Positions 19,876 to 64,000 of a DNA stretch of 64,000 nt are shown here, piece by piece. The notes beneath the pieces are model-generated. The model was not told the origin of the DNA and made no database searches. It saw nothing but the letters and a program-made list of their open reading frames with translations. The number at the start of each line of letters is the position of its first letter. Position 1 is the stretch's first letter. The translations under genes were made by a program, and so were the position numbers. This DNA comes from Phaeosaccion multiseriatum. Lineage: Eukaryota > Protista > Ochrophyta, other classes. The stretch lies in NCBI GenBank assembly GCA_965112735.1, contig OZ218960.1, positions 62,001 to 126,000 of the forward strand, in the 5' to 3' direction.

Positions 19876-21949
19876 GCGAGAGAGGGAGAGAGAGGGAGAG
19901 GGAGAGAAAAAGAGAGAGAGAAAGAGAAAGAGAAAGGGAAAGGGAGAGGGAGTGAGGGAGAGGGAGAGAGAGAACGAGAGAGGGAGAGTGAGGGGGAGGG
20001 AGAGAGGGGAGTGGGGTAGATATTGATAGATTGGGGGGGAGGGAGAGTGTGAACGGTAGTAGCAGCCTGCTCTCACATCCAGTTGGGGGGCCTCCTCAGA
20101 GACTTCCCTACCTTCGTCTACCTCTCTCCCTCTCCCTCCTCCTCTCCCTCTCGACAGGCAGTGGCGGTGTGTCCCGGCTGCGAGTCTGCCCGGGAAACTC
20201 ACGACCTCTACCACTACCGCATCGACGCAGCCGTCAGGAAGCACAACGCGTGCCACAGGGAGGGGCGCCTGCTGCTGCTGGACATTCACGGCCAGGTGTG
20301 TGTGTGTGTGTGTGCGTGTCTGCGTGTTTGTGTGTGCGTGTGTGTATGTGTATGTGTGTGTGTCTGTGTGTATGTGTGCGTGTGTGTGTCTATGTCTCTC
20401 TGTGTGTGTGTGTGTGCGTCTGTGTGTGTATGCGTGTGTATGTGTGTGTGTGCGTGTGTGTGAGCGGGGGGTGTGTTTGCACGTGCCCCCCCTGTCTCAC
20501 CGTTAGTATGTGTGAGTTTGTTTTGCTCCTTCTCGGGAAGCGGGACGGCCTCTGACCTATGCACGCCCACACCCACACCCACCCACACACCCACACACTC
20601 ACCCACACGCTCACCCGCACCCACGCAGGCGAAGCACTCGGAGGCGGTGCTGTTGGGCACTCAGGGAGGAGACACGGCAGACATTGAGGCCCTGGAGCGG
20701 CCCGGGGAAGGCTTTCTCTGGCACCTGCGCAGGGAACTGGGGGGGGCGCTGCAGCAGGGGGGGGTGGCAGTGGATGGGTGTGTGTCTAGCACGGTCCTGC
20801 CCGAGAGGGGGGGGGTGGAGCTGAGCGGATACCGCGGAGGCTATACCGTGCAGAGGTGAGGTGTGCGAAGGTACAGAACAGGCATACGGGTATCACACAG
20901 GCATACGGGAGCATGCATCGCGTCTGCTCCTCTCCTGTCATGGCCGTGTTTCTATGCGGGTTGGTGATACATACGTGCTCACATACTCGATGGGCGTCTC
21001 CTGTCTGCTCGCCCTCCCTTCCTCTCCAGACACAGCGGCTTGGGGGTGAATGCCATTCAACTCGAGTTTGGGGATAAGTGGCGGAGAGCGGCGGGTAAGA
21101 GGGGGGAGGCCGCACAAGCATTGGCGACGGCCCTGTTCTACCACCTGCAGCCCCTCGTCCCCTTCGTGGCAGATGCGGTACGTAGTGAGGGTTACGTAAT
21201 TAGAGCAGCCAACGCGGAGCGAAGCAAAGCAGCAAGAGAGGAGAGAGAGAGATAGAGAGGGACAGACAGATGAAGATGGCGAGAGGGAGGAGAGGAAAGA
21301 TGGCATGGCTCAAGTCTTTTTACTTCAAGCGTCATCTCACTTGTTCGTTTCCGTTCTAGTTTCAATTTCAGAGTTGTTCTTGACGTCGTTGTCCCGACCC
21401 CCCTCCCCCCCCCCTCCTCCTCCTCCTCCTCCTCCTCCTCCTCGGCTTGTGTAGGCTCAGCGCCTGAGGGAGCCTTGGGGCAGAGAGCGGCAGCTCCGAG
21501 TGGTTGGGGCGTTACAGAAGTTAGGCCTCGCCACCCCTGCGCGGCTCATGGCCCTCCTTGAGAGCGGCAGCAGCAGCAGCAGCAGCAGCGAGGATGGCAG
21601 CGGAAGGGACAGTAGCGAAGATGTCAGTGGACGGGGAAGTCACTCTTGCTTGGGCGACGAGGATGGCAGTGGACGGGGAAGTCCTCCCATAGGCTTCCGA
21701 GGTGGGGCCATTAACAGCAAGAAGGACAAGGACCAGGCAGCAGCAGCATTAGCAGAAGGAGAAGATAGCAGCAATCATAGCAGCAGCATTGCGTATGTCA
21801 AGGGCAACAGCAGTATTGCATGGGTCAAGGGCAGCAGGAGCAGCCAGGGCCTAGCGCTGCTCAATGCCAAGCTGAGGCGGGCCCGGGAGCAAGAGCTCAA
21901 CGAGGGGGAGGCCGCCGCCCTTAGAGAGAGCTTTCGTATGCTGCTCTGA
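19347..21949 (+). CDS. N-formylglutamate amidohydrolase (HutG/FGase)-like Zn hydrolase with C-terminal extension
   Basis: Exons 19347-19601, 19693-19776, 20158-20295, 20629-20855, 21030-21177, 21455-21949. Motifs [10 protein letters not shown]-x-[36 protein letters not shown] and NAIQLEF occur in the expected order. Confidence 0.85.
19786..20017. repeat. (GACA)n and (GA)-rich polypurine tract, intronic
   Basis: Directly visible. Confidence 0.9.
20296..20462. repeat. Degenerate (GT)n starting at an intron donor
   Basis: Directly visible. The donor GT is the first unit of the run. Confidence 0.9.
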
Positions 21950-22549
21950 GTGGGGGGCACCCCTCGTGATGAAGTACGTACAGTAAGTTATTCCATTTGT
22001 ACTGCCCTTAATCCCTATAATTTTGAAGTCATTTGCCCTTCTTCCCCTCCTAATCGTATGTAACTATTTAGTAATCCTCCCTGTTCACTCCGTGGGTTTC
22101 TGTTGCTTCTGTTTGTCCAGTGAAGAACGATTGGAAATTCGCAAGCCCCCCGCCCCCATTTTGCGTCACTCACTCTCTCGAGCCTGGCACCAAGCGTGGT
22201 GACTGACCATGTGCCCGTATGCCCGACGGAAGCAGTGCAGTGATGCTCCAAACGGCTTCACGCACCATCCACCGTTGTACCACCTACTGCTGTGCCTGTA
22301 CAGCCTACCTACCCCGCAGCGAGGCGAGCCGGCGCTCCCCCGAAGTAGAGCAGCAACGCCCCCCCCCCACTGCCATCCACTGCCATCCACTGCCATCCCC
22401 GCACTTCGAAGGTCTCAACGATCTCCAATGCGACTCTCCACTTCTGCCCCAGAGCCCGCCATCCACTGCCATCCAGCCACTCGTGCTCCTCGCGGACAAC
22501 AAACTACTTGCCTTCCTCACTCAAGCACTCAACAAGCCACGCCAGCTAC

Positions 22550-25134: not shown

Positions 25135-25879
25135 GGCTCTCTGTTCTCCTCCTCTCGGGTCTCGGCACCTCTGGCGGCTGACGCCTCGCTTCTTCGCTCA
25201 ACCCTCTCCCCTCACGACAGTTTTCCTTCTTTTCCCTCCGGGAGATCCTCTGCAAACGAGCGGTACTACACCAATCAGGTTAGTGGAGGCTGCTGCTGCT
25301 GCTGCTGCTCCAGCCGCTAGCTGTTTTTTATATAAAATCACGTGTGTGGTTCGTTGGTGGAATTGACGTCATCGTTGAGTTTTGGTTTCAGGTGCCACCG
25401 CCCAGTTTCCGTTTCAATTTGGGTACTCCCGGCCCAAAAGAAATTGTCCAATTTTTTCTTCAAGCAAAGAGGGAAGAAGAAGAAGAGGGATCAGAGCGAG
25501 AGGCCTAATCAAGCCGGTGCTGCTTCAGGGATCTGTCTTCCTCTTGAGTGGCTGTCCTCGTTCGAGTGGTGGAAGCGTGTGAGGTGCTGGATTGTACCGG
25601 ATTGTGGACCTGAGCGAGTCTCGATGCTTTGATCAGCAGAGCGGGGCGTGTCGTACGCGACTGGGGACGAAGGGACAACGAACAGTACAGCCTACAGAGA
25701 AGCGAAGGTCTGCAGGACGCTGCTGGACAGGAAGGGAGAACGAGAGCCGTAGAAGCTCCAGAACGGGCCCTAAAAGAATCTTAGAAGAGAGCGGAGGAGG
25801 AGAGCAGCTCGCGACTGGGCAGAAAGGGACAGCGAGGAGTACGGGCTACGGCAACAGCGGGGCCTTACAGCACACTCCG

Positions 25880-28846: not shown

Positions 28847-28922
28847 CAGTGGATACATATTGCCAGAGTCCTTGGATGCATGTTCAGTGGATACATATTG
28901 CCAGAGTCCTTGGATGCATGTT
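28847..28922. repeat. Perfect 38-bp tandem duplication
   Basis: CAGTGGATACATATTGCCAGAGTCCTTGGATGCATGTT at 28847-28884 and 28885-28922. Confidence 0.9.
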
Positions 28923-29578: not shown

Positions 29579-32500
29579 TCACATCCGAGCTGCCGTTGAA
29601 GAGCGTCGAGCGTCAGCAGCAGCAGCAGCAGCCGCAGCAGCAGCCTCAGCGGCGTTGGCAGCGATGCGAGCCTCGACGTTCTTGAGGTTAATCCTCATCT
29701 GCGGGTGTGCCCCTGCCCTACCCTCAGCATCGCCGCCCTCGTTGTCCATCACTTCGATTGCCCTCGCATACAGCGCCCGCGCCTCCTCCAGCTCCCCCAG
29801 CAGCTCCTGTACGGTTTCAGTTTCAGTTGAATGCACTGTAAGGTTAACACGTCACGTCGGGTCCGTAACCCATGTGTGGGTAGGAACCACTCGCTGCTCT
29901 CTCTGTCTAGATTCTTGTCCTTTCGTCGTTCGCCAGCTCTTCGTTTCTTCGTCTCTCGAGGTGTGCCATGGCATCTTCTCACCTTCTGTCTGTTTGTGAT
30001 CCTCTCACTCTCTTCATACCTCCCTCTCTCCTTGTCCCTCTGTCTCTATCGCTCTCTTCTCTCCGTGTGTGTGTCTCTCCGCATCTCTCTCTTCCCTCTG
30101 TCTCATTCCCTTTACACACTGCACCAACCAACCCATTCCCTTCACACACAGCACCACCCAACTCGACCGCTTGCGTGGTAGACGGCCTTAAAAACTGCAA
30201 ATGAGCTGACCACTGAACTGAACCACGACTTTCCTTCACCCTTCACCTCACCTGCAGGTAGCCAACATTGTTGAGCAGCTCCGGCGAGCTTGGCTCCTGC
30301 TGCAGGGCCCGCGAGTACAGGCTGCGGGCAGTGACCAAGTCCTGTTTGTCCTGATACGCCACCCCCGCGTTGACCAGGAGGGCCAGGCTGTCAGGCTCGT
30401 GCAGCAGCCCTGTTGCAAAGGCTTCGGCGGCCACGTCTAGCAGTCCGCCTGCGGAGTACAAGGAGTGGAGGGGAGGACGTGGAGTAAGTCGAGGCACCAG
30501 GACGAAGGGTATGTGATGTGAAAGGATAGTCATGGTCAGATATAAAGATGGAGGAGACAGAGAGGAAGAGAGAGAGAAAAGGGAGAGAGAGGTACTTGGA
30601 ATAGTTTTGCGTCTCTATCCACCCACCCACCAACCCCACGCACGCACGCACGCACCGTCCTTGGCGGCAAGCCCCATTTGGTTGTAAATATCCTCGAAGG
30701 CCATGCGATCGCCGCCATCCACTGCCATCCCCGCGTTTCTGTGGGCCGCCTCCACGTAGCTGCGCACTGCCTCAGCGAAACCGCCGCGAAAGGCCAACGC
30801 CATTGCTCGGCAGTACCACGCCAAAGGGAGGGCTTGCCCCCCTGCCCCTCCTCCTCCTGCTCCTCCTTGGCCCTCGTCCGTCCTCCCTCCTCCTTCCCCC
30901 GCCTCCTGCTGTATCACCAACAGCTGCTGCTGCTGCTGGTGGTGTTGACCGTGCAAATACCGCGGAGAGGGCCCCAGGCTCCGCTCGAGGTAGCCCTCGG
31001 CGATGAGCAGCAGCTGATGAGCGTCGTCAAGCGCCCCCAGCCCCGCCGCCTTGGTCACCAGCAAGAGGTGCTCGTGTGCCAGGTACGTGAGCGCGTGCGC
31101 GTTCTCACCCCGACCAATCATATCGACATCGACATCGGTATCGATAACACTGCCACCGGAGGAGGGGTCAGAGGAGGGGTCCAGTTGCCGTTGTTGTTGT
31201 TGTTGTTGCACCACGGGGCGTAGAGATAGCTCCAAGTGCTCAATGGCAGCGGCGCTGTCTCGCTGGAGGCGTGCGGCAAGGCCTCTGTTGTACTGTGCAA
31301 CTTCGAAGGTGGGGTAGATCTGGAGGCATATGGAGGGAGGGAGGAGGGGGTGGGCGGGAAGGAGGGGGGAGGGAGGGAGGGAAGGAAGGAGGGGGGGGGG
31401 GGAAGGAGGGAGGGAGGAAGGGAGGGAAGGAAGGAGGGGGGGGGGGGGAAGGAGGGAGGGAGGAAGGGAGGGAGGGAGAGGTCCGGGGATGCAGGGATAA
31501 GGGACAAGGCGGGAGGGTCGGAGGAGGGTGGCTTAGCACAAGACAGTAGAGGGAGAGGCGGAGCGGGCGTAAAGGAGAAGCAGCACCAAGGCGTGCAAGG
31601 AGAGGGGGGGGGGAGGAATGAGGATCAATCTGCGGCTTTCCCTCTCTCGGATCGATCTCCCCCCCTACCCTCCCCTCTCCCTACCTGCAAGGCCCTGTCC
31701 AGCAGCTGTGCTGCCTCCCCAGCCTCGAAGGGCGTGAGCTTAAGCATGGCGAGGTTGTTGAGCGTCTTGACTCCCGAAGGACACACCAAAAGGGCGGCCT
31801 CGAAAAGGGCTCTCTCGCTGCGCCACTCCCCGCAGCGCCGATAGGTTCTGACACCGAAGTGCACAGCCCAAGCGAGGAGCAGAACCAGCAGCAGCAGTCG
31901 CAGGCTTCCCTGCGACTGGGGGGGGCGCGAGGGTTGTACCACCAACTGGTGTGGACTCTTCCCTCCTGCGTCTTGCTGCTCCACCGTAGACGGTGCAGAA
32001 GGTTGGCCGCTGCTGCGCACTTTCTCCTTCTCCTTCTCCTCGTCCTCCTCCTCGTCCTCCTCCTCCTGCTCCTCCTCCCCGTCCTCATCCTCTTTCTCAT
32101 CCTGCGGGTCCGTTTCGCTCTCGTCCGTTTCGCTGCCATCGTTCTCCTCCTCCAGCTCCTCTAAAATGGCCTCTCCTGCCAACACCTCATCATCATCATC
32201 CTCCTCCTCCTCCTCCTCCTCCCCCTCCTCTTCCGCCTCTCCTTCATGCTCTCCTTCTCCTTGTTCTTGCTCTCCCTTGGATACGACCGTTTCGTCCTGG
32301 TTCTTCTCCTCCTCCCACCTTTTCACGCCCTCCTTGCTCTCCTCCTCATCGCCCTTCCCCCCCTCACCACCTTCTCCCACGTCCGCATCCCCTCGATAGT
32401 CGTACAGCACACACCCAGCCAGCACGCACGCCCCCACGCTCGGCAGGTAGAGCAAGCGCTCCGCCAGCACCGTGCCCACGGGAAAGAAGAGCTGCGCCGC

Positions 32501-33033
32501 CGGAAGGAATGGAACCAACAACATGACCATACCCCACAGCAAGGGGAAGTGGCGCAGGCGGAGGCCCATCACCACTGCCCACAAGGCCGCTGCATAGAGG
32601 ACTACGGCCAGCCCATTACGCCAGTCCGCCCACTCCTCGATTCGAGGCAGGCAAGCCCACCCCCAGTCGTAGCACAGCCTCTGGGGCCACAGCAGCAGCC
32701 ACGCGTAGCGCACGTGGGTATGTGCGTAACTCAGGAGCCGCGCCCGCTTCAGGGGAAGGATGGCAATGTCGTTCTCAAGCACGCCCCAAGGCCGCAGCAG
32801 GGATGACCCGTGGAGGGCTACATGGGACAGCACCACGCCAATTGTGAGCCCCACGAGCGCGCCCATGCGAAGGAGCAGGCAGACAAGGCCTTCTCGCCGG
32901 CTGTGCTGCGCCACGGCGGCCCAAAACACCCTCCACCACGAGCTCCTCCCACAGAGGCCACTGGGGGCACCCCTCTGTCTCTGCTGCGCCTTCTGCTGCC
33001 CACTCATGTCCCTCTTGGGCGGTTGTATCACCA

Positions 33034-33071
<38 letters not shown>

Positions 33072-34844
33072 TGTTGCTCCTGCATTGGCCAGAGAGAAGC
33101 CCGCAGGAAGTGCAAAGCCTCTCCACAGAGCAGCACCCCGAAGGTTGTGACTCCAACCTCCTTGCACAGCGTCGCCAGCACGGGCAGTCCCAGCGACAAG
33201 CACACCTTGACCGCTGGCATAAGGCGCCCATACCACCACTTCCACCACCAACACCCGGCCGCGATGCCTTCCTCCCCACCCTCCTCACTCTTCTCTCCCT
33301 TCCCCTTCCCCTTCCCCTCCCCATCACCCTGGTCCCGTGCCTCCTGCCGAGTGTGATGCGGCGAGGGCCAAGCCAGCAGCAGGGCGGCCAAGCTGAGCAG
33401 GCCACAGAGCACATCTGCCCTCCCCACGAGGGGCGCCACGGCCTCCACATGGGCGGGGTGCACGGTGAAGAGCAGCGAGGACAGCACGGCAGGTGTCTCC
33501 TGCAGTCGCACCACACGCGGGCTGGTGCTTGGGCTGCTTGGGCTGCTGCCAAGCTTTTGGCCGTTACTACTATTCCTACTTGTACTGCTACTGTTCTTAC
33601 TTGCCCGAGGGGGTTCACAGCCACTCTCCTCCCACGCGGGGGGAAATGGGCCTGCCCTGGTCTTGGGCGCTGATGCTGCCGCTGGTGCTGCCACTGAATC
33701 ACCAACGGCTGCTGCTGCTGCTGCTTTTGTGGGTTCCGCTCGGCTGATGGGCCCGCCTACGGCTCTCCGTGCCAGCGTGGAAACCCTGCCTGGCACAGGC
33801 GTCACGGCGAAGACCCTCCTCACGAGCAGTAGCACCAGCACACACGCGAGGGCGTGCAAGCATACGTTGGTCAAGTGGAAGTGGCGAGTGCATCCACTGC
33901 TACTACCTTCCTCCAGCCGAAGCCCAGATGCGTGCTCGCTCCCCGACTGGGGAGACGAGGGGGGGAGAGAGGGGGGTGAGGATGGGAGGGGGAGAGAGAG
34001 GGAGTTCGAGATGGAGTGAGACTGAGAGTGAGAGAGACACACATAGGGAAAGTCAGAGTGAGATAAACACACATGTACACACATCAATAGAGAGAGGGGG
34101 GCATGCTCCGGTAAGGGCACGCGCCGGAATCCTTGGAGGGAGGGCAGCAACCAGGCCGAGCTCAGCTTTGAGTGCAAGCACCACAAAGTAGGGGCCTTGC
34201 CGACGAGCGTGGCGTCCGTTGCTGTAAAGGCACAGTTACTGCTCCAGGTGCAATCTTCTCCACCCTCTCGTCGCTCCCTACCCCCCCTCCTCTGCCGCTC
34301 ACTTACCCGCTCGGAGTCGCTGCCGTGGGCGAACAAGGGGCTGGGCGCGAGCGCCCTGTTCCATCGGTACGTGGCTGTGGTGAGGGGCCTGAAGCTCTTG
34401 TGACTGCCAGGGAGGGTGATGTCCTGCCCCCAGAAGTCGTGGTGGAGGAGGGAGGACCAGGGCTGGTCGGCATTGATGTCTGCGTTGTCGAGCTGTGGAG
34501 AAGAGGAGGTGAAAGGGCGAAGAGAGGAGTGAGAATCTTACATGCAATTTTCCGGCCTTCCCACCCCGCTCTACATGTCCTCTGCCTCTTTTGCGACTGG
34601 GAGTCTAGAGTCTTTGCGTGCGCGAATGAAGGGAAGGTGACAGGGAATTTGCAAGGACAAACCGTGACGAGTGACGGCTAACGCTCACCACAGCTGCTCT
34701 GTCGTCCCACACAAAGCCTCCCTCCAGCGTGGTCCAGTGAAGTCCAGCAGCCAACAGGAAGATGCACAGCGGAGCCAGCCATGGCCTAACCAGCCTCTGC
34801 CTCTCAATCGAATGGAGCAGCCCGAGGAGAACCTTCCGCGGCAT
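29579..34844 (-). CDS. TMTC-family protein O-mannosyltransferase (DUF1736 + TPR repeats)
   Basis: About 6 exons. GFVWDDRAAV|LDNAD, HDFWG...SHKSFRPLT, FHLTNVCLH, LFTVHPAHVEAVAPLVGRAD, LCKEVG, LLLWPQRLCYDW, FFPVGTVLAERLLYLPSVG, EWRSERALF, then TPRs (KTLNNLAML, LLVNAGVAY, LLNNVGYL). Confidence 0.92.
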
Positions 34845-45485: not shown

Positions 45486-46146
45486 TCACCCGCTCCTCTC
45501 CTCCTCCTCCTGCTCCTCTTCCTCCCCCTCCTCCTCTAGTCCCCCCCCCCCTCCTCCTCCTCCTGCCGTCACCTCCTCGGATTGGCCGCCTCCCCCCCGG
45601 GGCCGGATGAGACGCAACTCCCTTAGTTCACACAGCGGTGCGACACTCGGCCTCCCGTGCGCGCACTGAAAGGGCAGGCTGCAGCGGGACAGCTGTGACA
45701 CGATGGACGAGCACTGCGCCAGGCTCAGTAAGTCACCGAAGCGGACGGCGCTGTGACACGCCTTGTACTGCAGGATGTGGTGCACCTGCAGATGGCAGTG
45801 GATGGTAGGGGATGGCAGGGTATGGCAGGGGATGGCAGGGGATGGTAGGGGATGGCAGGGGATGGCAGGGGATGGCAGGGGATGGCAGGGGATGGCAGGG
45901 GACGGTAGAGGGATGGCAGTGAACGTCAGTGAATGGCAGTGAATGGCAGGGGGCGGCAGGGGGTAGCAGGGGAAGGTAGAGGGATGGCAGTGAATGTCAT
46001 GGCAGAGAGGGAGGATTTCGGTCAGTCGGTCGGTCAGTAGGGTGTAGTACACGTGTGTGTACATCGGCGAGGGGGCGAAAGCAGACAAGGCGGTACGAGC
46101 CTGGGGGGGTGAGGGGAAGCTCAAAAGGAGAGGGAGAGAAAACTCA

Positions 46147-46181: not shown

Positions 46182-47143
46182 AGTACTCACATGTGCGGGC
46201 TTCACCCAATCGGGACTGCCGACATGGTGCTCTACCAAGTGGTCGACGAAGCCAAGCATGTCCCGCGTAGAGAGGCGCACGCCCATCACAGACGGCACCG
46301 CACTCACCAACACAGTCACCTCCGACGCCTCTGATGACTCCCATGCCTCCGACTCCGACCCTGACTCCGCCCCCGCTTCGGCCTCCCCGGGGTCCTCGGC
46401 GTCGGCCTCTAACGAGCGTGGTCCCGCTTGCCTCTCTCCTTCGCACCCGTGCTCTTGCCCTTGCCCTTGCTCTTGCCCTTGCCCTTGTTCTTGTCCTTCT
46501 CCCTCCGCAGCGATGCGGCCTCTGCCTGTATCCGACGCTGCTGAGCGAGCCCCCTCCCCCTTCCCCCCCATCCCCTCGAAGCGAAACTGGAACTGCCAAT
46601 TGGCCAGCTGCGGCTCGAAGCGGCGCAGGGCGCTCGCATAGTGCGCAGACACACGGATTCGATCCGGCGGCTCGAGTGTGAGGCGCTGCACGTTCCGCTC
46701 CGTCCTGTCCGCCCCATAAACTGCCGTCTCGAAGGCGTCCAGCTTCACGCGCTCATCGGCTGCGTGCTGATCCAGCAGCAGCAGAGAGGAGGCCCCGGTG
46801 TGCACCCGCCCGTGCCTCCCCTGCCCTTGACCCAAGCATTGCTGCGCATTTCCTCCTCCCCCACTTGCTCCTCGCCATTCACTGCCATCACTCGGAGGCT
46901 CTAGTCTGGTGCGCACGACGATGAATCGGAGGTCCACCTGTGTACAATGCGGCGTGTCCAGAGACAAGCAAGCAAGAAAGACGCCGAGGACGTTAGAACA
47001 GCAGCAAGGGCCGAGATGAACTTGCCCTCCCCTCATCTCTCGTCACCCCCCCCTCCCTTCCTCGTCCGTTCTCCCCTCTTCCCCTCCTTCACTCTCCCCT
47101 GTCCAACTTGGGCGACAGTTGCAAAGGTCCTACTGTACCATCA

Positions 47144-47176
<33 letters not shown>

Positions 47177-48644: not shown

Positions 48645-51600
48645 TGTCCACATACGCGACGAGGGCGAGAGTGCCGCTCGGTGCCCCTCGGGGGACTAAT
48701 AAAGGGCTCCTCGACTTCTGAGGATGGGAGTCCTCGCAGCGCGCGGGGAGGCGTCGCCAAAGCCAAAGCACCCCCACCACCACAACCACCCGCCTCTCGA
48801 GAGCCATCCTCCGCCGCCGACCGCCGCCGCACGGGAGGGCCTATCGCCTGAACTGCTCTTCTGCTCCTTCCTCGCCGTTCACGAATGTTCCGTTGGCCAT
48901 CCTCCTCCATCTCCCCCTCCTCCTCCTCCCTCCCCCCATCCCTCCTTCCCTCCTCCTGCGACTCCTGCTGCTCCCGCTGCTCCTGCCCCGCATTTCCTTC
49001 TGCCGCTGTCAAGAATCCCCTCTCCCCATCACTGCTGAGGTCGAATTGTGGACTGGGCGGGCGCCGCACAGTGACTCGGTGAGTTGGAGCCTCCAAATGC
49101 TGTTGCAAGGAGGCACACGGTCCTCGAGCAGCAGCAGTTGGTGATACAGCACAAATAGCAGGGCCGTCGGGACGCGAGGGGGGCGGTGACGGGGTGTAGG
49201 CGTACGAAGAGAACAGATCCAAGACAGGCGAAGACGGACCCCGGGGTGAGTCCGCGTCCCCGGATGCCAGCGCCCGCCACCGATGGGTGTACCTCCCCGT
49301 CGCCGCCGCTCCTTCCTCTTCCCCACTTCCTCCGTTGCCATCTTCTTCACCTTGGGCCTCCCCCGCGTCCCAATACCCGTCCTCCACCAGCGGGCCGTGC
49401 TTCTTCGCACGCCGTGTGGGCGACAACTCTGCTTGCTCTTCTTCTTCCGTTGCTGCGCACCTCTCAGTGGGATGCTCTCTCTCTTCCTCCCCCTCCTCCC
49501 TCTCCTCCTCGACTTGGAACCGTCCCTCCTCTACAGCCCGTTGCTGCTGCCTCTCCTCCTCATCTTCAGCCCCGTCCCCCCCTGTCAAAGGCCCTGTAGC
49601 CATAGCTCTCCACCCTCTCTTTCTCCGTCGCGTCGACTGCTGACTCCTCCTGGTGTGCTGACCAGCTCCAGTAGTTGGTGCTACAGCAGCAGCTGGTGAT
49701 ATAGCCGCAGCAGCACTAGCTCTGTGGGAAGTACCGCCGACTTGTCTGCTGCCATCCCCTCCTAGAGCGAACATACGACTACTTGCTCCTCCTGCCGCAG
49801 GTGCATCACGTGCACCACCTCCCGTAGCACTAGCAGCCTCCTCAGCAGCTGCCTGGTGATAGTCCTCAGCAGCTGCCTGGTGATAGTCATCGGTGCGGTC
49901 ACCGTTGCCATCCTCCTCATGGTATTGATGGGTGCCATCCTCGTTGGTGCCCCCCTGGGCATACTGATGGGTGTCATCACTGCCGAATGCCAAGAAGTCT
50001 CCTCTGAGCGACGTGCCCCTCCTTCCGTCTCCTCCCTCTGCCCCTGTCTGATCGCCCTTGACCGATGCAATGTCCCTACCCATACGATTGCTCCATACCC
50101 ACCCCGCATCCGATGTCCACCGACTCGCTGCTCCCCCATCATGGCATGGCTCAAGGGCAGCAGTTGGTGATACAGCAGTACGGCTGGGTCCCGAGGGTTG
50201 GCCATGATGTCCCTGGTGTGGGGGCGTGCGCTGGTCTGGGGAGCGCAGATCCACGTCGGACAGAGCGCCACTGGGGAGACAAGCAAGCAAGCAAGCAAGG
50301 AAGGAAGGAAGGAAGGAAGGAAGGAAGGAAGGAAGGGGGGAAGGAAAGAAGAAAAGAAGTAAGGAAGGGAGCAAGTAGGACGGAAGGAAGGGAGGAAGGA
50401 AGGAAAGAAGGAAGGAGGGAAGAAAAGACAAAAGGAAGGAAGGAAGGAAGAAAAGAAGGAAGAAGGAAGGAAGGAAGAGGGGGCGAAAAAGCGAAGGGTG
50501 AGGAGGAGACGAGAAGCAGAGATGAGTGGAGAGACGGAAAGGGAGCCGAGAGTGGCAGAGGGAGAGGAAGGTCGCGGCCGTGAAGGGAGCGGCAAGGAGA
50601 GGAGTAGCGGGGCTCGCAGCGATGACGGAATGGGGGGGAGTGGGGTTGTAGGGGAGTTGGTTGTACGTGGGGTATAGGGCAAAGGGACCGGTAGGTAGGG
50701 GTCCGTGGGAGGGCACCGCTACAGCTACCGCTACTGCCTGACTGCCTGTCCGCAAGGAGCAAGGCGAAGGCCCATCTGGCCATCTCACCTGGTCACTTGT
50801 TCGTCTGCAGGTAGAGCAGCGAGCCTCAGCGCTGCCTCCGCGTCTGCCGCTGAGCCCCTCAAGTCCGTCCCATCCCCTCCATCCACTGCCATCTGCCCAC
50901 CTCTGCCCACCCTCCCCGTCGGCTGCAGCGGCAAGACTGCCGTCACCGCCGGCCGTACGAAGCCGGTCCGCCCCGTGGCAATGCCCATGCCCAGTGTGGT
51001 TTGCTGCTGGCTGACAGAGAACAACGACGATGGAACCCCTCGTCCTCCCCGACCCTCCCCCGTCCCCTCCACTGCCGATGTCGCTGTATCACCAACTGCT
51101 GCAGCTGCTGCTACTGCGTCAGCGCCGGCGTGGGCCTCGTCGCACTCCTGCACCTTACGTCGGAGGTCGCTCAAGGAGCAATCCGGCACCTGACGAGGAG
51201 GATGGCAGTGGATGGGGCGGGGGGAGGGGATGAGGAGGAGGAGGAGGGGGGGGAGGCGGAGAAGGAGGAAGAGGGTACACGATTTCAGGTTGTAAGTACT
51301 GAAACTGAAACCGAAACTTTAGTACTCCTAGGGTACGCACCACATGGGGGAAGGCGGAGAGGAAGGCCAGGAGCAGGCCGGCAGTGCAGCAGCGAGCAGC
51401 TAGAGAGTCCGAGAAGTGGATCACAGACTTGTCTGCTTCGCTCAGGAGGTCGAAGCTGTGGCGCACACGCATGCATACATCACAGGGAACAAGGGAGGGG
51501 AGGAAGGGTAGGGGAGGGGCATTACACCATATGAAATTGTTGGGCTCGGCGCTCTGTCTCTGACATCTGTGACATGTGCAAGCTCTCATTGCAGCGATGA

Positions 51601-52631: not shown

Positions 52632-52672
<41 letters not shown>

Positions 52673-54428
52673 GGTAGGTGGGTGCACGTAGGTGCCAATA
52701 TGAGTCGAGGAGCAGGGAGGGCGTTAGAAAAGAACGCGGTAAGGCAGGGAGGGGTGGTCAGATTTCCGCGGATAAGGAAAGCACAGAGGTCCCGAAAATA
52801 AGGGGCCTCTCTGTCCCTCCCATCCACTGCCATCCCTCTGCCCCTCTACCCTACCCATTCACTGCCATCCCTCTGCCCCTCTACCCTCCCCATCCACTGC
52901 CGTCCTTCCGCCCCTCCCGTCCACTGCCATCCCCCTGCCCCTTTAACCCACTGCCATCCTCTGTCATTCCTTTGCGCCTCTCACCTGCACGGGATGCATG
53001 GCCCTGCGCTTGTCCTCCCCGAAGAGAAGCTCGAAGCGCGCAGATGGCGACGCGCACGGAGGGCTCTGAAGCACCACCTTGCCCCTGCGAGAGCTGGGCG
53101 AAGGCGTATGGGGAGGGAGATTAGAGGACTACGGGAAGGAACAATAGAGAATAAAGCACGCTCGCACGCACTCACGCACCACGCACTCACCCGTCCTTGA
53201 GCACGAAGGCCACGCCTGCATGAAGCAGCGAGATGCTGAGTATCGTCTCCCTGAGCCTGTTTCACACCCCAAGTTCCAGTTCATGCAGTTCGTGGGGTCG
53301 GGCAGGTGTTGAGATGAAGGCAACCCGATAATACTGAAGGGCAGATTGTCCTTCTCTCAACAGTGGGTCACTACACACACATCAAGCATCCATGATCGTC
53401 AGACAGCGTGTCCCACAGAGCTCACACGGACCTGGCGAGCTGCTGCTGCATGTCCAGGGCTCTCCTCCGCACGGGATAGCGGTAGAATAAGTCACGCACA
53501 GTCACCACGGTGCCGTGACCCACCGCGGCTAGCGTTCGGGCAGCCTCCAAAGCCGAGGAAGAGGAAGGGGAAGAGGAAGAGAAGGATGGGGTAAAGGATG
53601 ATGCGCTGGTGCCCTGCCTACAGGGCTGAGCTGCTGGGGCTGTAGCTGCTGGTGCTGGTGCTGGTGCTGACCCCGGGGGGTGCGGCGTGACCTGCTTGCA
53701 GGGCAGCACCTGCCCGCCCCGCACCATCTTGGAAAAGGCGCTTGCGGCACCGGGGCGGCGCGATGTCACCTCCAGCAGAGACGTGGTGGCCAGGGACACA
53801 AGAGCCTCGCCTCGAAAGCCGTACGAAGAGGCCGACGCCATGTCATGCAGGCTTTGGGCTGATGCGTGTGGGTGAGTGTGTTTGAAGGGAGGGGAAGTGG
53901 CAGTGCGGTTTGTACTATCAGGGGCGTGAAGGCAAAGAGGTTACAACACCTCTTCTTTAGCACTGTATTCAGGGTCAGGGATAAGATATAAGATAGAAGA
54001 GCGAAAGTACGAGTGCGTAGGGTCTCCTTATCCCTCTGAAAAGGATAGATACGGTGAATCCATCGTGAGACCGAGCAGCCAAACGTCCAAGCCAAGCAAC
54101 GACATTATCAATCAAGCTGGATAGATGCTTCCCCACCCCCCTTCCCTTTTACTGTCTCACCCTTAGAAGTAGCGTGGGCCGTCCCTGTGAGCCCCTGAAG
54201 CGCCGCCTCCTCAATGCCATGCCCATTGTCCGTCACCTGTACTCTGTACGAAGGGAAGTCGCAAACCACCTCGATAGCGGAGGCGGAGGCATCCAGACTG
54301 TTGTAAACCAGTTCCTCCACAACCTGCGCAAAGCTACCCAGCACAGCAGCGGAGCGAATCTGCTGCGCCGTTCCCTCCACGATACGCTCCACTACGGGGG
54401 CTGGCTGAGGAGGGTGCCGTGAGGGCAT
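45486..54428 (-). CDS. MLH3: DNA mismatch repair / meiotic crossover protein MutL homolog 3
   Basis: About 10 exons. GHKL ATPase motifs VVEELVYNSLDA, VTDNGHGI, HATSK, YGFRGEAL, GTVVTVRDLFYRYPVRR. C-terminal VIGQ|VDLRFI, DQHAADERVKL, KACHSAVRFGD and LPFQCAHGRPS, the last being typical of MLH3. Confidence 0.92.
45791..45995. repeat. Tandem decamer minisatellite (GATGGCAGGG/GATGGCAGTG) abutting the acceptor of the last MLH3 exon
   Basis: About 20 degenerate units are directly visible. Confidence 0.92.
50281..50478. repeat. (GCAA)n/(GGAA)n polypurine tract in an MLH3 intron
   Basis: Directly visible. Confidence 0.9.
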
Positions 54429-54751: not shown

Positions 54752-56044
54752 CTATTCCTTGGGGGAAGTAGCTCTAGGATACAAAAAGAAAGGGGTACAC
54801 AGCAGTTGGTGATACAGCACAGGATGAGAGATGAGCGCTGCGAAGAGGATTACATTTACTCCCTCTACGCTTGCTCGTTGGTGTCTCGCTTGAGGTGCAA
54901 GAGAAAGACTACCTCCGCCAGAAGGGGGCCTTGGACGCCCACCGTCTCCGTGTCCGTAAGGTACCATCGTAACGCTGCATCTTGCGCATCTTGCTCCTCT
55001 TGTCCGCCACTTCCTCGGCCCTTCGCAAACGCGTCTACAGCCCGTTACACCCGTAACGGCACGGGGCGTCGCGTGTTGCTTCCCATGCCGCGTGCGTGAA
55101 CTCCGACGGCGGATGGCGTGGGTCGCTGGCATCACGACACGAGAGGAGCCACCCCGTAGCAGTCGCCCCTCCTCCTCTGCCCTGCTCACTTGCACACCTT
55201 CGTAGCACTGTGTAACGGCATTGGGAAGGTCCCGGGGAGAGTCGTGCGCTGTGAAGGGCCGACTGCTGCAGGCAGCAAAGGGGCAGGCAGCAAAGGGGCA
55301 GGCAGCAAAGGGGCAGGCCAGGCTACGCAAGCCCGACCCCCTTCCTCTTCCTGCTGCGGCTTCGGCGGCGGCATTCTCGATGGCGCGAGGGACGCAATCG
55401 CCGCAAACAAAGTGCTTGACAACGGCAACGTTGGTGGCGTCTGTTCCCTCTTCCCGCTCGGGGCTGCACTCCATGCCTCTGAGGGCGTTGCGGTCTCCAT
55501 TCAAGCACAAGCAACAGGACCTGCCTGCCTGACTGCCCTGGAGCGAAGCCCGCGCTTCAACTCAGCGCTTTGCACCCATCAGCAGCTCGGCTCGGTCGAC
55601 AAAGGGTGTGGCTATGCTCTGTGGGTCCTCAACAAATTATCACTCTACTAACCCACCTGCCTCCTCTGTTGTCGCTCGAGTAAGGCATCGCCCGTCACTC
55701 TGGCCCGCCAGCTCTCAGCGTCACGCCGTATCCTCTCCAGCTCCACCTCCACCTCCTCCTCCTCCTCCTCCTCCTCCTCCTCCTCGTCGTCGTCGTCGGC
55801 GTCGTTGTCTCTGCATGCTTCTACTCTCACTATCCACCCCGTCGCTCACACCTTCGAGTAGTACTAGTAACAGCAGCAACAGCGGGCCCCTCACTTTCTC
55901 AACACCACGGCACCAACAAAGGCTCTGCGATGCTCCCACCCCCCTCAAGGCTGCCCATTGTCACAGGCTGACACTACTGCTGCTGCGGCTGTAGCTGCTG
56001 AGGATAGTCCGCCTAAGCCTTGCTGCTGCTCTTGCCGTGCCATC

Positions 56045-56080
<36 letters not shown>

Positions 56081-57700: not shown

Positions 57701-57743
57701 GAAGGAAGGGGGTGATTGTGCTACTCGGCCGCGCCCTCATCGT

Positions 57744-59228
57744 TCATCCTCCTGTTCCTCTTCCTTGTCCGCCTCCTCCGTTCTTGTCCTGCTTGTCCTC
57801 TTGATGCCCCCCCTCCTCCTCGTACTCTTCGTGGTCGTCCTCGTACTCCACTTCCTCCTCACAACAATGCCCACTACCCACCCCATTGCTAAGACCCCGG
57901 CCCCCCATCCCATGCGAACTAGCAACAGCAGAAACACCAACAGTAGTGGCAGCAGCAGCAGCCGGAACAGCAGCAGGAGGAGCAGGGAGAGGAGGGGCAA
58001 CGGGGGCAGAAGGAAGAGCAGCACCATGAGGACTCGACGTCCAGTTCGAAAATGGCCCCGCTCCTCCTTCCCCGCCGCTCCTAACACCGCTGGCAGCAGG
58101 AGCAGCTACTGGTGATACAGCACTAGCCCCATCTCGAGGGAGGGCGGGAAAGCCCATGACGACAAGCTGAGCCAACGTAGGTCCTCTACCGGCCTCCATG
58201 TCCCCCTTCTTCTTCTTCGTCTTCTTCTTCTTCATCATCTTCGTCTTCGTCCTCTGCACATTCTGCTCCTCGACGTAGTCCTCCTCCCCCTCTTGCGCAA
58301 TGACCTCTGGCTGCTGTATCACCAGCTGCTGATCGACCTGCTCCTCCTCCTCCTCCTCCTCCTCCTCCTCCTCCTCCTCCTCCTCCTCCTCGACGAAGGC
58401 AGGCATGTCCTCTTCCTCCCCAGCAGCAGCAGTGGCCGAAGTAGCAGCAGCAGGCGCAGCAGAAGGATAATTGCCAGGGCGAAGGGCATTGACAGTGTCC
58501 ATCACTAATGCTACTGCGGCTCCTTCCTGTGGAGACGAACCCTCTGCCCAGACACACCCCTTCTCCTCCTTCTCTCTCGCCGTAGTACCCTCGCCCTGCT
58601 GCTGCTTGTCGCGTTGTTGTTGCTGCGCCCTCGCCCTGCGTCGTCGTCCTTCAAGCTGCCGCCCCTGCTGCCTCCGCGCTTCGCCAGCTGGCTTGCTGTC
58701 GCCGTGTGCCTGCTGCTGTATCACCAACTGCTGCTGCTGCCGAAGCTTGGCAAAGCCTGCGCGGCCTGACAGCTGGGGGGCGTGTGTGCACTCCCTCCCT
58801 TGCTCCTCCCACGCGCTCCTCGCGAGGTCTTCCCTCTTCTCGCGCTGCCTCGTGGCGTCCATGTAGAGCTTCTCATGCACGGTGCAGGAGAGAAGCATTG
58901 CCTCGGTGGTGGTGAGGTGATCTTTACTCGAGCAATACTCTTCCTCTTCCTCCTCCTGCTCCTCCTGCTCCTCCTGCTGCTCCTGCTGCTCCTGCTGCAG
59001 CTGCTGCTCCTGCTGGTGGTGGTGCTGGTGGTGGTCCCGCTCCCTCCGCTGCCGCACCCCTCGCAGCAGCAAGCGCCTCTTCCTCTGCCTCTCGGCGTGG
59101 ATGGCCTCTGCCTTGGGGGTAATGGTGGGTGTGAAGGTGAGTTCCGACTCAGAGCAGTCGTCCCAATCGCGCAGGTGCTCGGGAATCACGTAGCGCTGCT
59201 GCACTTCCTGCTGGCCCTGTATCACCAA

Positions 59229-59266
<38 letters not shown>

Positions 59267-59828
59267 CAGTGCGGTCGCTCTTGGTCCATGCCGTACCACT
59301 GGCGACCATCTGCCGCCTATGAGAGGCGAGCAGGTGGGCTGTCGGAGGCCCCTGTCCCTGTCGGCTTTGCAGTTGGCTCTCCACGAGAGCGCAGAACTTA
59401 GTGAACGTAAGCATGGCGCCTGCAGTACCACCCCCCCCTAGTTGGAGACCCTCCTCCTCCTCCTCCTCCTCCTCCTCCTCCTCCTCCTCCTCCTCCTCCT
59501 CCTCCTCCTCCTCCTCCTCCTCCTCCGCTGCTACTGGATCGCCAAGCACTGCTGCGCCACCGCTGCCGTTGAAGGAACCGGATCGCAGAGGGGCGAAAGC
59601 ATCATGCACGAGCTGTGCGAGCTCGCTACCGTGCTGCTGCAGCAGTTGGTGATACACGTCAATGCCGTCGAGCTCGAGCCGCATGCCCCTCCAGGCCTCG
59701 CTCGAGTCGTCCAGGATGGCCTTCACCGCCACGGCCCGGGACTTCTCGTCCTCCTCGACTCGGAGACCCTCCTCCTCCTCCTCCTCCTCCTCCTCCTCCT
59801 CCTCCTCCTCCTCCTCCTCCTCCTCCTC

Positions 59829-59862
<34 letters not shown>

Positions 59863-62800
59863 TCTTGTTCTTGTTGATCTTGTTGCTCTTCTTCTTCCTC
59901 CGCCTCGTTCATCACTGTTCCCTCTCGCCCCCCTCCATCTCCCCCTCCCCCTCCCCCTCCTCCTCCCACACGGCCACCGCTGCTACTCGGGCGGCGCACG
60001 CTTGTGAAGGGGACGGTGTTGGTGGCGGCGACAAGTAGAGTGCGAAACAAGGCCTCCAAGGCCCTCTCTTTCATGTACTTGACTAAGCGCTTTGACGAAC
60101 GGGTCGAGTGCGCTGCGGTCTGCTGCCGCTCCACCTCCCTCTCACGGGCCTCCCTCCGTCTGCGGGCGTTGCGGAGATCCTCTTGACTCTTGCGGTACAG
60201 TCGCTCGTACACGGTTCTTGTCGACGCTGCTGCCGTATCACCAACTGCTGCAGCTGCGCCATCTCCGGTGCTGCCCCTCCTCCTTCTCCGCCGTCCCGCC
60301 ACCCCTCCCACACCGCCCCCAGGCTCCGAATCTGAAGCGGAAAAGGCGTCCGAAATCATCCCACCCGCTTGGTTCGCCCCTTGATACTCCACCCCCCCCT
60401 CCGCCGACTCGATCGAGGAGGCCGATTGTGTATCCACGTGATGCTGCGACTCACAGAAGGGAATGATACGGGGGCGGAAGGTCTCGTGGGGTGAGGGCCG
60501 CGCGGTCGTCTCTTGGCGCTGACGCTCGAGCTTTGCTTGGCGACGAAAGTACTCCTGTTGGTTGTTTGGAGGAGGTGTACGTATGAATGGCAAAGGATAA
60601 TGGACGGATGGTTGGTTGGGTGGATGGATGCGAGAGAGTAGACCTCTAATAGTACACGCATGGTATGGTGTACGACAGATGAGAGAGGGCAGCTTACTGA
60701 TCCTCCTTCTCCATGGGTGCTTCTGCTTCGTCTTTGGACGTACGAAAGATACAAAGAAAAGGGAGAACAAGAAAATGACAGAAAACATGTGCCAAGACAA
60801 GACAATAAAAGTGAGGGTACTGACCTTGTACAAGCGCTCCTGTACAGGCCCTTCTCTGTCGGGCAGCCACTCTGCCCAGAGGTTGATACGGGGGGTGAAG
60901 GGGCATTGCTGGCTCTGCAGCAGGGCAGCCTCCTCTCGGAGGGACTCCTGCCGTTTAAAGTGATCTTCGTAGAGGCGTTCTGCAGAGAGAGCGTAGGGAG
61001 GGAGGGGGGATGAGTGTGAGCGAGAGAGGTACATATCACTCACTCACACTCACTCACTCACTCACCCACACACCCACCCACTCACTCACTCACTCACTCA
61101 CTCCACTCCCCCTCCCCTCCGTCTCTCACTCACCGCTGCAGTCAGTGTGATTGATACTCCTCCTTGTTGTGGATGCTCTGCCGCCCCAATCTCCTGCTGT
61201 CCCTTCTCCTCCATCCCCCCCGTGCAGGCCACTCTCGTCCTCGTCCTCTATGTACGACAGCGAATCCGGGTCCAGATCGTATTCCTCCTCTCCCTCCTCC
61301 CCGTCTATTGCCATCCCCTCCACCTGCTGCCGCCATTGCCTCCGCCGTGCCCTCCGCTCGGCCAAGCGCACACTGCGTGGCGGCAGGGATGGCGCAAAGG
61401 GCATCGAAGTAGACACTTCGCTTAGCACCTGCGTGTATATGGGCAGGCATAAGCAGGTATATCGGCAGGTACGTACGGGCAAGGCACGGAAGCGTACGTA
61501 GGGCGGGCAGGCGGAAAGGTGTATGGGCAAGCACAAATGAGAGCATACGAGCCAAGCAGAATGCGGAGGGAGTTCCCGCAGCAGTTGGTGATACAGCCCA
61601 CTCCTCACCCCCCCCGTCCAAGCAGGTACCTTAGCGAAGGAGCTCCGGCGGGGACAGAGCGCCGCCGCAGCTGCAGCAGGAGTTGGTGATCCTGTAGTCG
61701 CAGTCACAGCAGCAGGGTTATACGAACCGGCGGGAAGGACCCCATTCCCGAAGGGGAAGGGCTCCCTATCTTCCACCCACGCCCCATCCTTTGCAGCGCC
61801 CTTGGGTTTCTCGCCCCCCGGGGCTCGCGCAGGGTTCCCCGCGGGCGAAACCCTACTCTCTGGTCTGCAGGAGTAGAGGTGGTCGAAGACAGACTGCTCA
61901 GGCGGGCGCTGGTGCCGTTTCGAGTCGAGAGGTCCCTGTAGATAAGGGGGGTGAGGAAGGCCAAGAGGCACGAGACACGGGAGCGCAACACGTGAGCAGC
62001 AGCAGCAGCATCCAAGAGGAGGGGAGGGGAGAGGGAGCTCTCTCCTTTCTGCTTTCGTCGAGTGGCATTCGTTGTGCGGTTTGATTTTGATATTCAGCCC
62101 CAACGGTGCGCACCTTGGAGCTGAAGGTCGTTGGTATGAACATCCGAGCGGGCCTCGGGACGCCGCAGCGCCGAATGGCATCGGTACCATAAGCACTGGC
62201 ACTCAAACTGCTGCTGTTCGCGGTCCCCACTGCTGCAGACATTCCACTCCTGTTGCTCCTATTGTTGTTGTTGTTGTTATTGTTGCTGCTGCCCTCGTGG
62301 CTGCTGCCGTCATTGCAGCTCCCAGTGTCAGCAGCATGGTTGAAGATGAGCGTTCCCCAGTGGCTACTGAGCTCCTTCTCCCCGCCCCCTCCCACCCATA
62401 TGCCTCTATTCCCCCCTCCTCCCCTGGGGCCAGCCTTGTGCTGCAGTCTCTGCGCAAGCTTCTCCACGCTGTGCGTCACTCTGACCCATGCGTGCTCCAG
62501 GGGGGCACTCTCCAGCGACTCCGTAGAGAGACCCATGGGCCTGGAGAGAGGGAGTTGAGTAGAGGGACATGGGGAGGGGAGGGGAAGAAAGGGAATAGAG
62601 CGTGGGAGATGAGGTGTGTACCTCCTTGGCACAGAGGAGAGAAGCACAACATTCATACGCCCCCCCCCCCCCCCTCCGTCCACCCCTCCATCCTCCTGCC
62701 CATATTCCCCCCTCTCCCCTGTGCCTCCTGTAAGTCAACAAATATCCCCCCCCCGCGTCGTGAACCCACCTCATACAGCCCCTGTCTTGCGGAGAGTTGC

Positions 62801-64000
62801 CGTACCCACACTTGGGGCAGGACCAGTCGCCCCACTGCTCTTTCTCCGTTCGGTCCTGCCTGCCCCTCTCCTGTCTCCTCTGCTGCGCCCTTTGGGTACC
62901 CTCCCAGGACTCGTGCAGCCGATGCCCCACCGGCAGACGCTGAAACGCAGCACCAGCAGCAGCACCAGTTGGTGATACGGCAGTGGCGGTGCTAGCGCTG
63001 GCCTGAAAGAGAACAGAATGCTCGCTCGGGACCCCCCCCGCGCTGTCTCCAAAGTTGCTCCCGTCGAGCACTCCGAAGGCGCCGTCCATTCCCCCGGGGG
63101 TCGACGCCAACCGCCGCAGTGCACTGTGGCCGGAGCTGCTCCGGCTCCTCCTCGGGTGCCCCGCAGCTCCATCTGTGGTAGTTGGTGATACAGTCGCAGC
63201 CGCAGCCGCAGCGGCGGCAGAAGCAGCGGCAGTGGTGGCTCTACTGAGAGCAATGATCTTGCGAGTCCCGCGGCTCAGCGTGGGAGCGAGTGGACAGGCC
63301 AGGGCCTCCTCCTGGAGCAGGACGGCTTGGTTGTGGCTCCTCTGCTCGGCTTGACGGCATCGTATCACCTCGGCATGACCGTACAGGCGCGCTACAGACG
63401 CCACCTGCTGCCTCTGCAGGGCCTTGTGCGTGTGGGCGTGTGCGTGCGCCCCAAACCTTCCGCCCCTGTCAGCACTACTGCTCCTGCTGCTGTGGCCCTC
63501 GCTGCTGGCGCCTCTAGTCTGCTGCTGCTGCTGCTGCTGCTGCCTCGTCTCCTCACTCGCAATCTCTCGCTCTCGCTGCTCGGCTCTTCCTCCTCCTCGC
63601 CCCTCCCCCCCCCTTCCATCCCTCTTCCTCCTTCTCCTCCTACCAGTACCTAGACTCACGTCCTCAACCCTCATTCTGCTCCGTATTGCCCCCTCCCGCC
63701 CGCTTCGTCCTCTTCCCCCCGATGTGATGCCCAAGAAAGCAGCAGCGTCGGTACCACTCCAAACCTCCCCCCTTCCCCCCTCCACATGCCCTGCGCACCT
63801 CTTTTGATCATCCTCGTGCAGTTGGCCTCCAGTCAAGTCTTTCCATCCTCCTCCTCCTCCTCCTCCTCCTCCTCCTCCTCCTCCTCCTCCTCCTCCTCCT
63901 CTTCCTTCTTCTGCGAGACTTCTCTCCCTTTGAGGCAAAGCCCCTCCATCGCCGCTGCTGGAGCTCACTGAGGGCCTACCCGGTCCGCTACTCCCTCGCG
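57744..64000 (-). CDS. Very large low-complexity protein with recurring ERLY...TFxPxI modules and a RanBP2-like zinc finger; 5' end outside the window
   Basis: Long ORFs 63968-62406 (frame open to the window edge) and 61043-57744, plus smaller exons. Repeated modules VARLY...CPLAPTL, VFDHLY...PFAPSL, ERLYEDH...CPFTPRIN, ERLYK...ETFRPRI, YERLY, ELTFTPTI and HEKLY...ECTHAPQL. GDWSCPKCGYGN...C finger. Exon structure only partly resolved. Confidence 0.7.
61037..61103. repeat. (ACTC)n tetranucleotide tract, intronic
   Basis: Directly visible. Confidence 0.9.

Follow-up and report, generated by a model that had tools for sequence, protein, structure and literature searches.

A Dispersed 17-bp DNA Word at the Edges of CAG/GCA Tracts in the Ochrophyte Alga Phaeosaccion multiseriatum

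Introduction

Short exact DNA words that recur throughout a genome, within genes, in several reading frames and on both strands, and that are specific to a lineage, are known from bacteria, where they are represented by HIP1 (GCGATCGC) of the cyanobacteria and by the DNA uptake and uptake signal sequences (DUS/USS) of Neisseria and the Pasteurellaceae. The subject of the present analysis is a word that behaves likewise, the 17-mer GCAGTTGGTGATACAGC, which is dispersed in approximately 25 copies through a 64-kb stretch of the genome of the ochrophyte Phaeosaccion multiseriatum (assembly GCA_965112735.1, contig OZ218960.1, positions 62,001 to 126,000; this whole stretch is referred to below as the window, and positions are counted from its first letter). 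HIP1 is an 8-bp bacterial palindrome, and DUS/USS are driven by the uptake bias of natural transformation, whereas the algal word is 17 bp long, non-palindromic, eukaryotic and tied to trinucleotide tracts with a polarity, and it bears no sign of maintenance.

Very short non-coding units without genes of their own are also represented by the RAYT-mobilised REP/REPIN sequences, which measure 20-40 bp and reach hundreds of copies. REPs are imperfect palindromes that fold into hairpins, lie between genes and depend on RAYT, while the present word forms no hairpin and sits within exons and introns. In the microsatellite-associated interspersed flanks of Lepidoptera and other invertebrates, a shared flank likewise stands beside the same microsatellite at many unrelated loci; these flanks are, however, tens to hundreds of base pairs of a recognisable mobile element, whereas the word is 12-17 bp with sharp ends and has no parent in the window. 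The microsatellite-specific non-long-terminal-repeat retrotransposons of the R4/Dong type resemble it in inserting into a simple repeat, in carrying a tail of that same repeat and in their polarity, but their copies are graded in length and their parents are several kilobases long, and the word is all-or-none at 17 bp.

Two further likenesses concern the repair of DNA breaks. Interstitial telomeric repeats arise at double-strand breaks, where telomerase adds approximately 1.5 units templated by its RNA, with sharp edges and no target duplication, and of the systems compared here this one comes nearest in mechanism to the model proposed below; the word holds no TTAGGG, and a telomere-repeat origin was set aside. 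End joining mediated by polymerase theta is likewise primed by microhomology, inserts a short patch of approximately 5-30 nt and rejoins the ends via microhomology, but it copies sequence near the break, so that each event is different, while the word recurs thousands of times. Of the families compared, only the loose class of microsatellite-associated interspersed flanks has defining tests that the word does not fail.

Abundance and Reality of the Copies

Seven exact copies of GCAGTTGGTGATACAGC are present in the window, starting at 41227, 49134, 50160, 54802 and 61581 on the plus strand and at 51083 and 58715 on the minus strand, and the exact count was 0 in 100 dinucleotide-preserving shuffles of the window. 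The 12-mer core of the word, GTTGGTGATACA, occurs exactly in 12 places and with one mismatch in 8 more, where chance would yield a mean of 0.07. The seven 17-mers had been recorded in a preliminary description of this DNA, all of whose coordinates for the word hold; the two-mismatch variants it listed were also found, and variants at 47134, 49692, 58108 and 61682 are clear relatives of the word, with the caveat that at the two-mismatch level approximately 5 chance matches to the core are to be expected in the window by our own calculation. The reverse complement, GCTGTATCACCAACTGC, differs from GCAGTTGGTGATACAGC, so that the word is not palindromic and its strands are counted separately. In a k-mer census of the window, this word and one other, treated in a later section, were the sole non-tandem words of such abundance. 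A position matrix of the copies assigns approximately 30 bits of information to the unit (a rough sum), which excludes a convergent origin and implies that the copies share descent.

The copies are real in that they recur in independent contigs. Logan contigs of one sequencing run (X1) span those at 59645, 60234, 61584, 61682, 62968 and 63181 with zero differences, and contigs of another (X5), which stems from a different sample and study, span those at 58108, 59645 and 61682; the word is thus not an artefact of assembly. In X1, the 200-nt bin that contains the 58715 copy sums to a contig depth of approximately 371,000 against a baseline of approximately 500 (a factor of approximately 700), and the loose ends of contigs stack at 58709/58710 and at 58740/58742, which means that the sequence common to this place and to thousands of other loci is only about 31 nt long. 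By the depth at this one locus the genome holds thousands of copies of the word, and a genome-wide excess is thereby supported.

Run X5 is labelled “DNA?” yet is RNA-like, with an uneven coverage of genes and with one contig that skips positions 60555-60824, a 270-nt GT..AG intron on the minus strand. The loss of this intron indicates that X5 behaves as RNA and that the word is retained in transcripts. The intron is itself open in frame, and a 1099-aa open reading frame (ORF) runs straight through it, from which it follows that the long ORFs of this GC-rich genome are no proof of exons.

Full-text literature searches with both words and with the complement of the first returned only primers and unrelated matches, and a search by concept returned nothing relevant to the word, which is thus undescribed within the full-text literature searched, as the preliminary description had supposed. 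The window gave no matches in a search of Rfam and no tRNAs in a tRNA search. Likenesses to U6 and U4 small nuclear RNA, to the tRNA D-loop and to the SMART oligo are partial and gapped and were taken as coincidence, and a derivation from a primer-binding site or tRNA 3′ end, suggested by the TGG that follows GCAGT, was dropped in the absence of a matching tRNA in the window.

Anatomy of the Word and Its Tracts

The position matrix reveals a GCA periodicity upstream of the word, and more weakly downstream, which continues in phase across the 12-mer (...GCA GCA GTTGGTGATACA GCA GC). The word is in this respect an in-phase interruption of a tract, and the repetition in its flanks allows the length of the word to be taken as 9, 12 or 15 nt. 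An in-phase interruption of CAG/GCA tracts by 9 or 12 nt had been put forward before and agrees with the matrix; what that account of the tract context missed is the polarity, with the word placed at the 3′ edge of the tract, and the existence of a similar second word.

The polarity is evident from the GCA units within 36 nt of the word, which average 3.5 upstream versus 1.7 downstream (Wilcoxon p = 0.0066). In nine CAG tracts the word lies at, or no more than 6 bases from, the 3′ edge, in two it lies directly at the 5′ edge, and all three CAG tracts of at least 10 units end in it. Approximately 70% of the copies have at least two CAG units upstream, while only about 15% of the CAG tracts carry the word, the window being unusually rich in micro- and minisatellites and containing 61 runs of at least 3 CAG units. 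Among its other repeats, (GGGA)n forms one long array and (GT)n several (15080-15700, 1-110, 12660-12760, 20290-20520). The age of a word did not correlate with the length of its tract (rho −0.09), and the idea that the tract grows from the word was dropped on this ground.

The unit is copied whole. In blastn comparisons between copies the likeness is confined to the word and the adjoining CAG repeat, over 19-46 nt, and no longer element was found around the copies within the window; a repeat finder run on the whole window was swamped by microsatellites. The 7-mers of the word, when counted outside full copies, occur at or within approximately twofold of their chance frequency, except for GTTGGTG, whose threefold excess is due largely to a local 12-nt minisatellite. 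Where the left anchor GCAGTTG is matched, the rest of the word follows with 0-3 mismatches or the sequence is unrelated with 6-8 mismatches, a division that leaves no room for truncated copies. Inspection of the flanks by eye disclosed no target-site duplications around tract and word, and the copies have no inverted ends other than a 5-nt imperfect symmetry. Folding of six copies with their flanks as DNA gave z-scores of −1.27 to +0.94 with no common stem and no consistent hairpin, so that the interrupted palindrome seen in the word by the preliminary description does not fold.

Reading Frames, Decay and Constraint

The clearest view of how the word is read is offered by the minus-strand gene at 57747-61043 (1099 aa), which contains six copies in four classes of frame and orientation: four are in sense, of which three read QLVIQ and one AVGDT, and two are antisense, reading AVSP and YHQL. 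This confirms the earlier statements that exonic copies occur in several frames and on both strands and that the unit is a DNA word rather than a peptide. A conserved peptide motif, kept in one frame with synonymous sites free to vary, was rejected, given that QLVIQ, AVGDT, AVSPT and YHQL occur with identical DNA. The unit is copied at the level of DNA, not of peptide or RNA. The strands of the genes were set by Pfam and orthologue matches (by which TMTC is on the minus strand and the VWA/PT gene on the plus strand), by purine skew and by the intron skipped in the X5 contig; over the window approximately 9 copies are sense and approximately 11 antisense. A runs test done by hand detected no clustering of orientation along the window (23 copies, 11 runs versus approximately 12.3 expected). 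The avoidance of the TGA-containing frame in exons, remarked upon earlier, is true, but it is true by construction and hence uninformative. The frames in use simply follow those that tolerate CAG/GCA tracts, as polyglutamine, polyalanine or polyleucine, minus the TGA frame.

Copies that are picked by their core inflate the apparent conservation of that core, and for this reason the central 7-mer was used as the sole criterion. With this anchor, mismatches are present in 11 of 100 other core cells (11%) versus 18 of 100 flank cells (18%), a difference which we judge, without a formal test, to be too small to matter on these counts; the assertion that the constraint is on the DNA word is accordingly not borne out. 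Mismatches per copy fall off smoothly (7, 4, 5, 2, 1 and 1 over 20 real copies). The rates in core and flanks and this smooth fall-off, small as the counts are, fit a process of copying that is followed by neutral decay.

TMTC is the sole gene of the window with an alignable orthologue, and in the alignment its copy at 33024 falls in a polyglutamine loop that is gapped in the orthologue, its copy at 31935 in a non-conserved acidic linker and its copy at 33695 between two conserved blocks that directly adjoin each other in the orthologue. As these segments have no conserved counterpart, the word is not shown to have been written across conserved coding sequence. In TMTC it thus appears to ride in dispensable segments rather than to be imposed on conserved codons, and comparison of the sequences brings to light no evidence for selection on the word.

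Distribution beyond the Window

In 596 Gb of prokaryotic genomes there were 102 single matches to the 17-mer, where approximately 70 are expected by chance on our calculation; viral contigs gave 34 single matches, mostly in one conserved AT-rich viral gene; and a metagenome scan with a 20-mer version gave 10 single matches, five of which come from near-identical versions of a single conserved locus, the other five being unrelated. Dispersal of the word within contigs was not found in the prokaryotic, viral or metagenome collections. Among the ochrophytes, the host stands close to the brown algae, its desaturase being most similar to those of Ectocarpus, Undaria and Phaeothamnion (60-62% identity, with no closer relatives found in the protein database) and its TMTC being closest to that of Discosporangium (33%). 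Neither the word nor the second word was found in the genomic contigs of Phaeothamnion, Discosporangium and Ectocarpus that were searched (44 kb), with approximately 14 copies expected at the density of the window, and when runs of relatives were searched at 80% likeness, one (X6) gave no alignment and another (X7) one poor 36-nt piece. The best reading of these comparisons, with three distant relatives as their basis, is that the word is probably confined to the lineage of this alga.

Individual Copies and Neighboring Features

Among the exact 17-mers, that at 41227-41243 (+) reads AVGDTA in the plus-strand VWA/PT-repeat ORF and has a single GCA unit upstream. Those at 49134-49150 (+) and 50160-50176 (+) are both antisense to a 1268-aa minus-strand ORF (AVSPTA), and that at 51083-51099 (−) follows an imperfect CAG tract. 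The copy at 54802-54818 (+) is situated in AT-richer, apparently non-coding sequence with no long tract near it, and the one at 61581-61597 (+) is probably intronic, approximately 30 nt from a putative minus-strand 5′ splice site identified by eye. The copy at 58715-58731 (−), at which the contigs pile up, stands between (CAG)4 and (CAG)3 and reads QQLVIQQ in sense.

An exact 12-mer core is retained by five further copies. All five flank positions differ in that at 20957-20973 (+), which is apparently non-coding; one flank mismatch is seen in that at 30908-30924 (−), which follows (CAG)5; and two are seen in that at 63178-63194 (+), which is antisense in a 530-aa minus-strand ORF. The copy at 33022-33038 (−) lies at the 3′ edge of (CAG)11 in TMTC, where it is read as polyglutamine followed by LVIQ in the loop gapped in the orthologue, and that at 59642-59658 (+), spanned by an X5 contig, is antisense in the 1099-aa gene (YHQL).

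Copies with one core mismatch are located at 14288-14304 (+), without CAG context; at 31933-31949 (−), in the non-conserved TMTC linker (HQLVVQ); at 33693-33709 (−), after (CAG)5 and between the TMTC blocks that are contiguous in the orthologue (either a lineage-specific insert or an intron); at 59216-59232 (−), at the 3′ edge of (CAG)11 and read in sense as QHLVIQ; and at 62965-62981 (+), antisense and after an imperfect CAG tract. Two more one-mismatch copies are read in sense, as QQLVIQQ at 58313-58329 (−) and as AVGDTA at 60232-60248 (−). Two core mismatches are carried by the variants at 47132-47148 (−), at the 3′ edge of (CAG)10, and at 58105-58121 (+), which is antisense in the 1099-aa gene and spanned by an X5 contig, and a decayed copy at 61679-61695 (+) has four mismatches in the 17-mer. 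Lastly, two diverged tandem copies, 18 nt apart, occupy 49671-49705 (+), and this pair is the sole hint in the window of the word beginning an array.

Two neighboring features deserve mention. A 12-nt coding minisatellite at 39790-40100 encodes a PT repeat (PF04886), and its minus strand, which reads GTTGGTGCAACT or GTTGGTGCTGCT, agrees with 9 of the 12 positions of the word's core, by kinship or by coincidence. On the minus strand at 7883-9694 there is a 603-aa ORF that starts with ATG, is apparently intronless and contains FNIP repeats (PF05725, E = 8e-31).

A Second Word

The second abundant word, GGATGGCAGTGGATGG, equals 1.6 units of the decamer GGATGGCAGT. It is present in 17 solitary copies on both strands, with sharp edges and G-rich flanks (those at 11882, 17249, 20766, 22459, 30715, 47474, 47876, 50879, 51204 and 52108 belong here), and in addition the decamer forms local 10-bp minisatellite arrays at 22367-22400, 45789-46010 and 52820-52960. 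Both words consist of slightly more than one unit of a short tandem repeat, and the existence of two such words suggests that a general process is at work in this genome and not a peculiarity of one sequence. Three pairs of the second and the first word (20766/20960, 30715/30910 and 50879/51085) are 194, 195 and 206 nt apart, which is close to a nucleosome repeat; their relative order varies and the sample is too small to judge.

Models for the Origin of the Word

Any mechanism has to explain the fixed length of the unit, the GCA-type 3′ context upstream of it, the polarity, the sharp ...ACAGC end irrespective of what follows, and the lack of a target duplication. The simplest fit to this combination is templated synthesis of one patch, primed by GCA and closed by CAGC. 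In the model that we tentatively prefer, with a confidence somewhat short of even, the word is a lineage-specific ultra-short interspersed repeat, which is patch-copied at 3′ ends in GCA and then decays neutrally. The unit of approximately 17 bp, GCA-GTTGGTGATACA-GC, would be copied whole at the DNA level, and each copy would be laid down in phase within a GCA/CAG tract, even one of 1-2 units, at the 3′ edge as read on the CAG strand. A DNA 3′ end in ...GCA, exposed at a break or a stalled fork, may pair with a template that bears the word, which we infer to be either another genomic copy or a short nucleic acid of fixed length; the 3′ end would then be extended by one fixed patch and rejoined via the terminal CAGC microhomology, after which the copy would decay through ordinary mutation. 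Since a unit of 9 or 12 nt that is in phase with the tract leaves five of six frames open, such copies could survive in coding sequence, where a low-complexity, non-conserved segment would tolerate four extra residues, as well as in introns.

Several points weigh against this model. The notion of an insertion is deduced from the pattern of the copies, and the template molecule is a postulate of the model. The templated insertions made by end-joining polymerases normally copy nearby sequence and not one fixed word. The copies at 20957 and 14288 are without any CAG context, and the exact copies at 41227, 54802 and 61581 have only 3-8 nt of GCA-type sequence upstream, which is too little for homologous strand invasion and leads to the microhomology-primed version of the model given above. 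Finally, 64 kb of the genome were read, and a longer parent element may exist elsewhere.

A broader version of patch synthesis, which we consider doubtful, sees in these words an undescribed copy-and-paste process for words of approximately 16-17 nt, in which a polymerase or reverse transcriptase would extend DNA 3′ ends after these had paired with the beginning of a short, invariant template. Slightly longer than one repeat unit, in the manner of telomerase, the template would yield one patch at breaks in simple repeats across the genome, coding exons included, with repeated rounds giving rise to local minisatellites from the same few words. The first word (CAG...CAG around 9 nt) and the second (GGATGG...GGATGG around CAGT) would then be two products of one process.

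The main rival to patch synthesis, which we hold to be unlikely, regards the word as the extreme 3′ end of a retroelement, whose RNA, ending in ...GCUGUAUCACCAAC(UGC)n, would be reverse-transcribed by target priming in CAG/CTG tracts and leave there a tail and a stub. The polarity is as this predicts, the antisense strand reading the word and then (TGC)n of variable length, and a simple-repeat tail of fixed polarity is indeed what the skew of the GCA units (p = 0.0066) and the three tracts of at least 10 units display. A stub left by reverse transcription should, however, come in graded 5′ truncations, and among approximately 23 copies none is longer than the 17-mer and none is truncated inside it. 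The flanks show by eye no target-site duplications around tract and word, exact copies exist with only one or two tract units, and there is no parent element within the window.

That the word acts as a functional signal in cis, akin to DUS or HIP1, be it a protein-binding, recombination-initiating or biased-conversion site, appears to us quite improbable. It is very abundant, strand-independent and genome-wide, some copies keep the exact 12-mer core when all five flank positions differ (20957), and the polarity of the tract beside it could reflect a cis-acting initiator; such polarity is known from human minisatellites. The antisense strand also has CAACTG and ACCAAC motifs, a putative likeness to Myb-type sites. 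Against such a function, approximately 30 bits is far above the needs of a binding site and speaks for shared descent, and once ascertainment is corrected for, the core does not clearly exceed the flanks in conservation (11% versus 18%). There is likewise no bias in orientation relative to genes and no clustering in the runs test, the TMTC copies occupy dispensable low-complexity segments, and the word is absent from the 44 kb of the three related algae. Hotspot motifs, moreover, are expected to erode and not to spread. A signal of the DUS/HIP1 or binding-site kind finds no positive support here.

Less probable still is a minimal DNA transposon or its footprint, in the form of a “nano-MITE” (miniature inverted-repeat transposable element) or of an excision scar whose duplicated target would be CAG. 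While CAG-9 nt-CAG resembles a 3-bp duplication around a short insert and there is a weak inverted symmetry GCWGT...ACWGC, the supposed inverted repeat measures 5 nt, includes a mismatch and does not fold, and a CAG on either side would follow just as well from insertion into a CAG tract. Excision scars vary in sequence, whereas the 9-nt core does not, and a full-length element with half-words at its ends was not found in the window. A conventional transposon of the MITE type with terminal inverted repeats was rejected for the same 5-nt imperfect symmetry and because the sequence shared between copies amounts to the word and the CAG tract. An artefact or repeated independent origin, whether by adapter contamination, by assembly error or by convergent coding selection for one peptide, is refuted by the presence of copies in contigs from two samples and studies and, in frame, within long ORFs, by at least four peptide readings, and by an expectation of zero copies by chance.

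Implications

In practical terms, the word is a source of error with which read mapping, repeat masking and gene prediction will have to contend in this algal group. If a parent retroelement were to be found, the case would shrink to an unusual but ordinary family of stubs. In the literature, the sequence collections and the families tested, no counterpart was found to exact words of this length that occur in thousands of copies in the exons and introns of a eukaryote without the hallmarks of a transposon. Should the copying step proposed by the patch-synthesis model be true, an unknown activity of DNA repair or reverse transcription would be recorded in this genome, one that adds four codons to proteins, seeds or caps trinucleotide repeats and builds minisatellites, and that would constitute a new source of low-complexity variation in proteins and of repeat instability.

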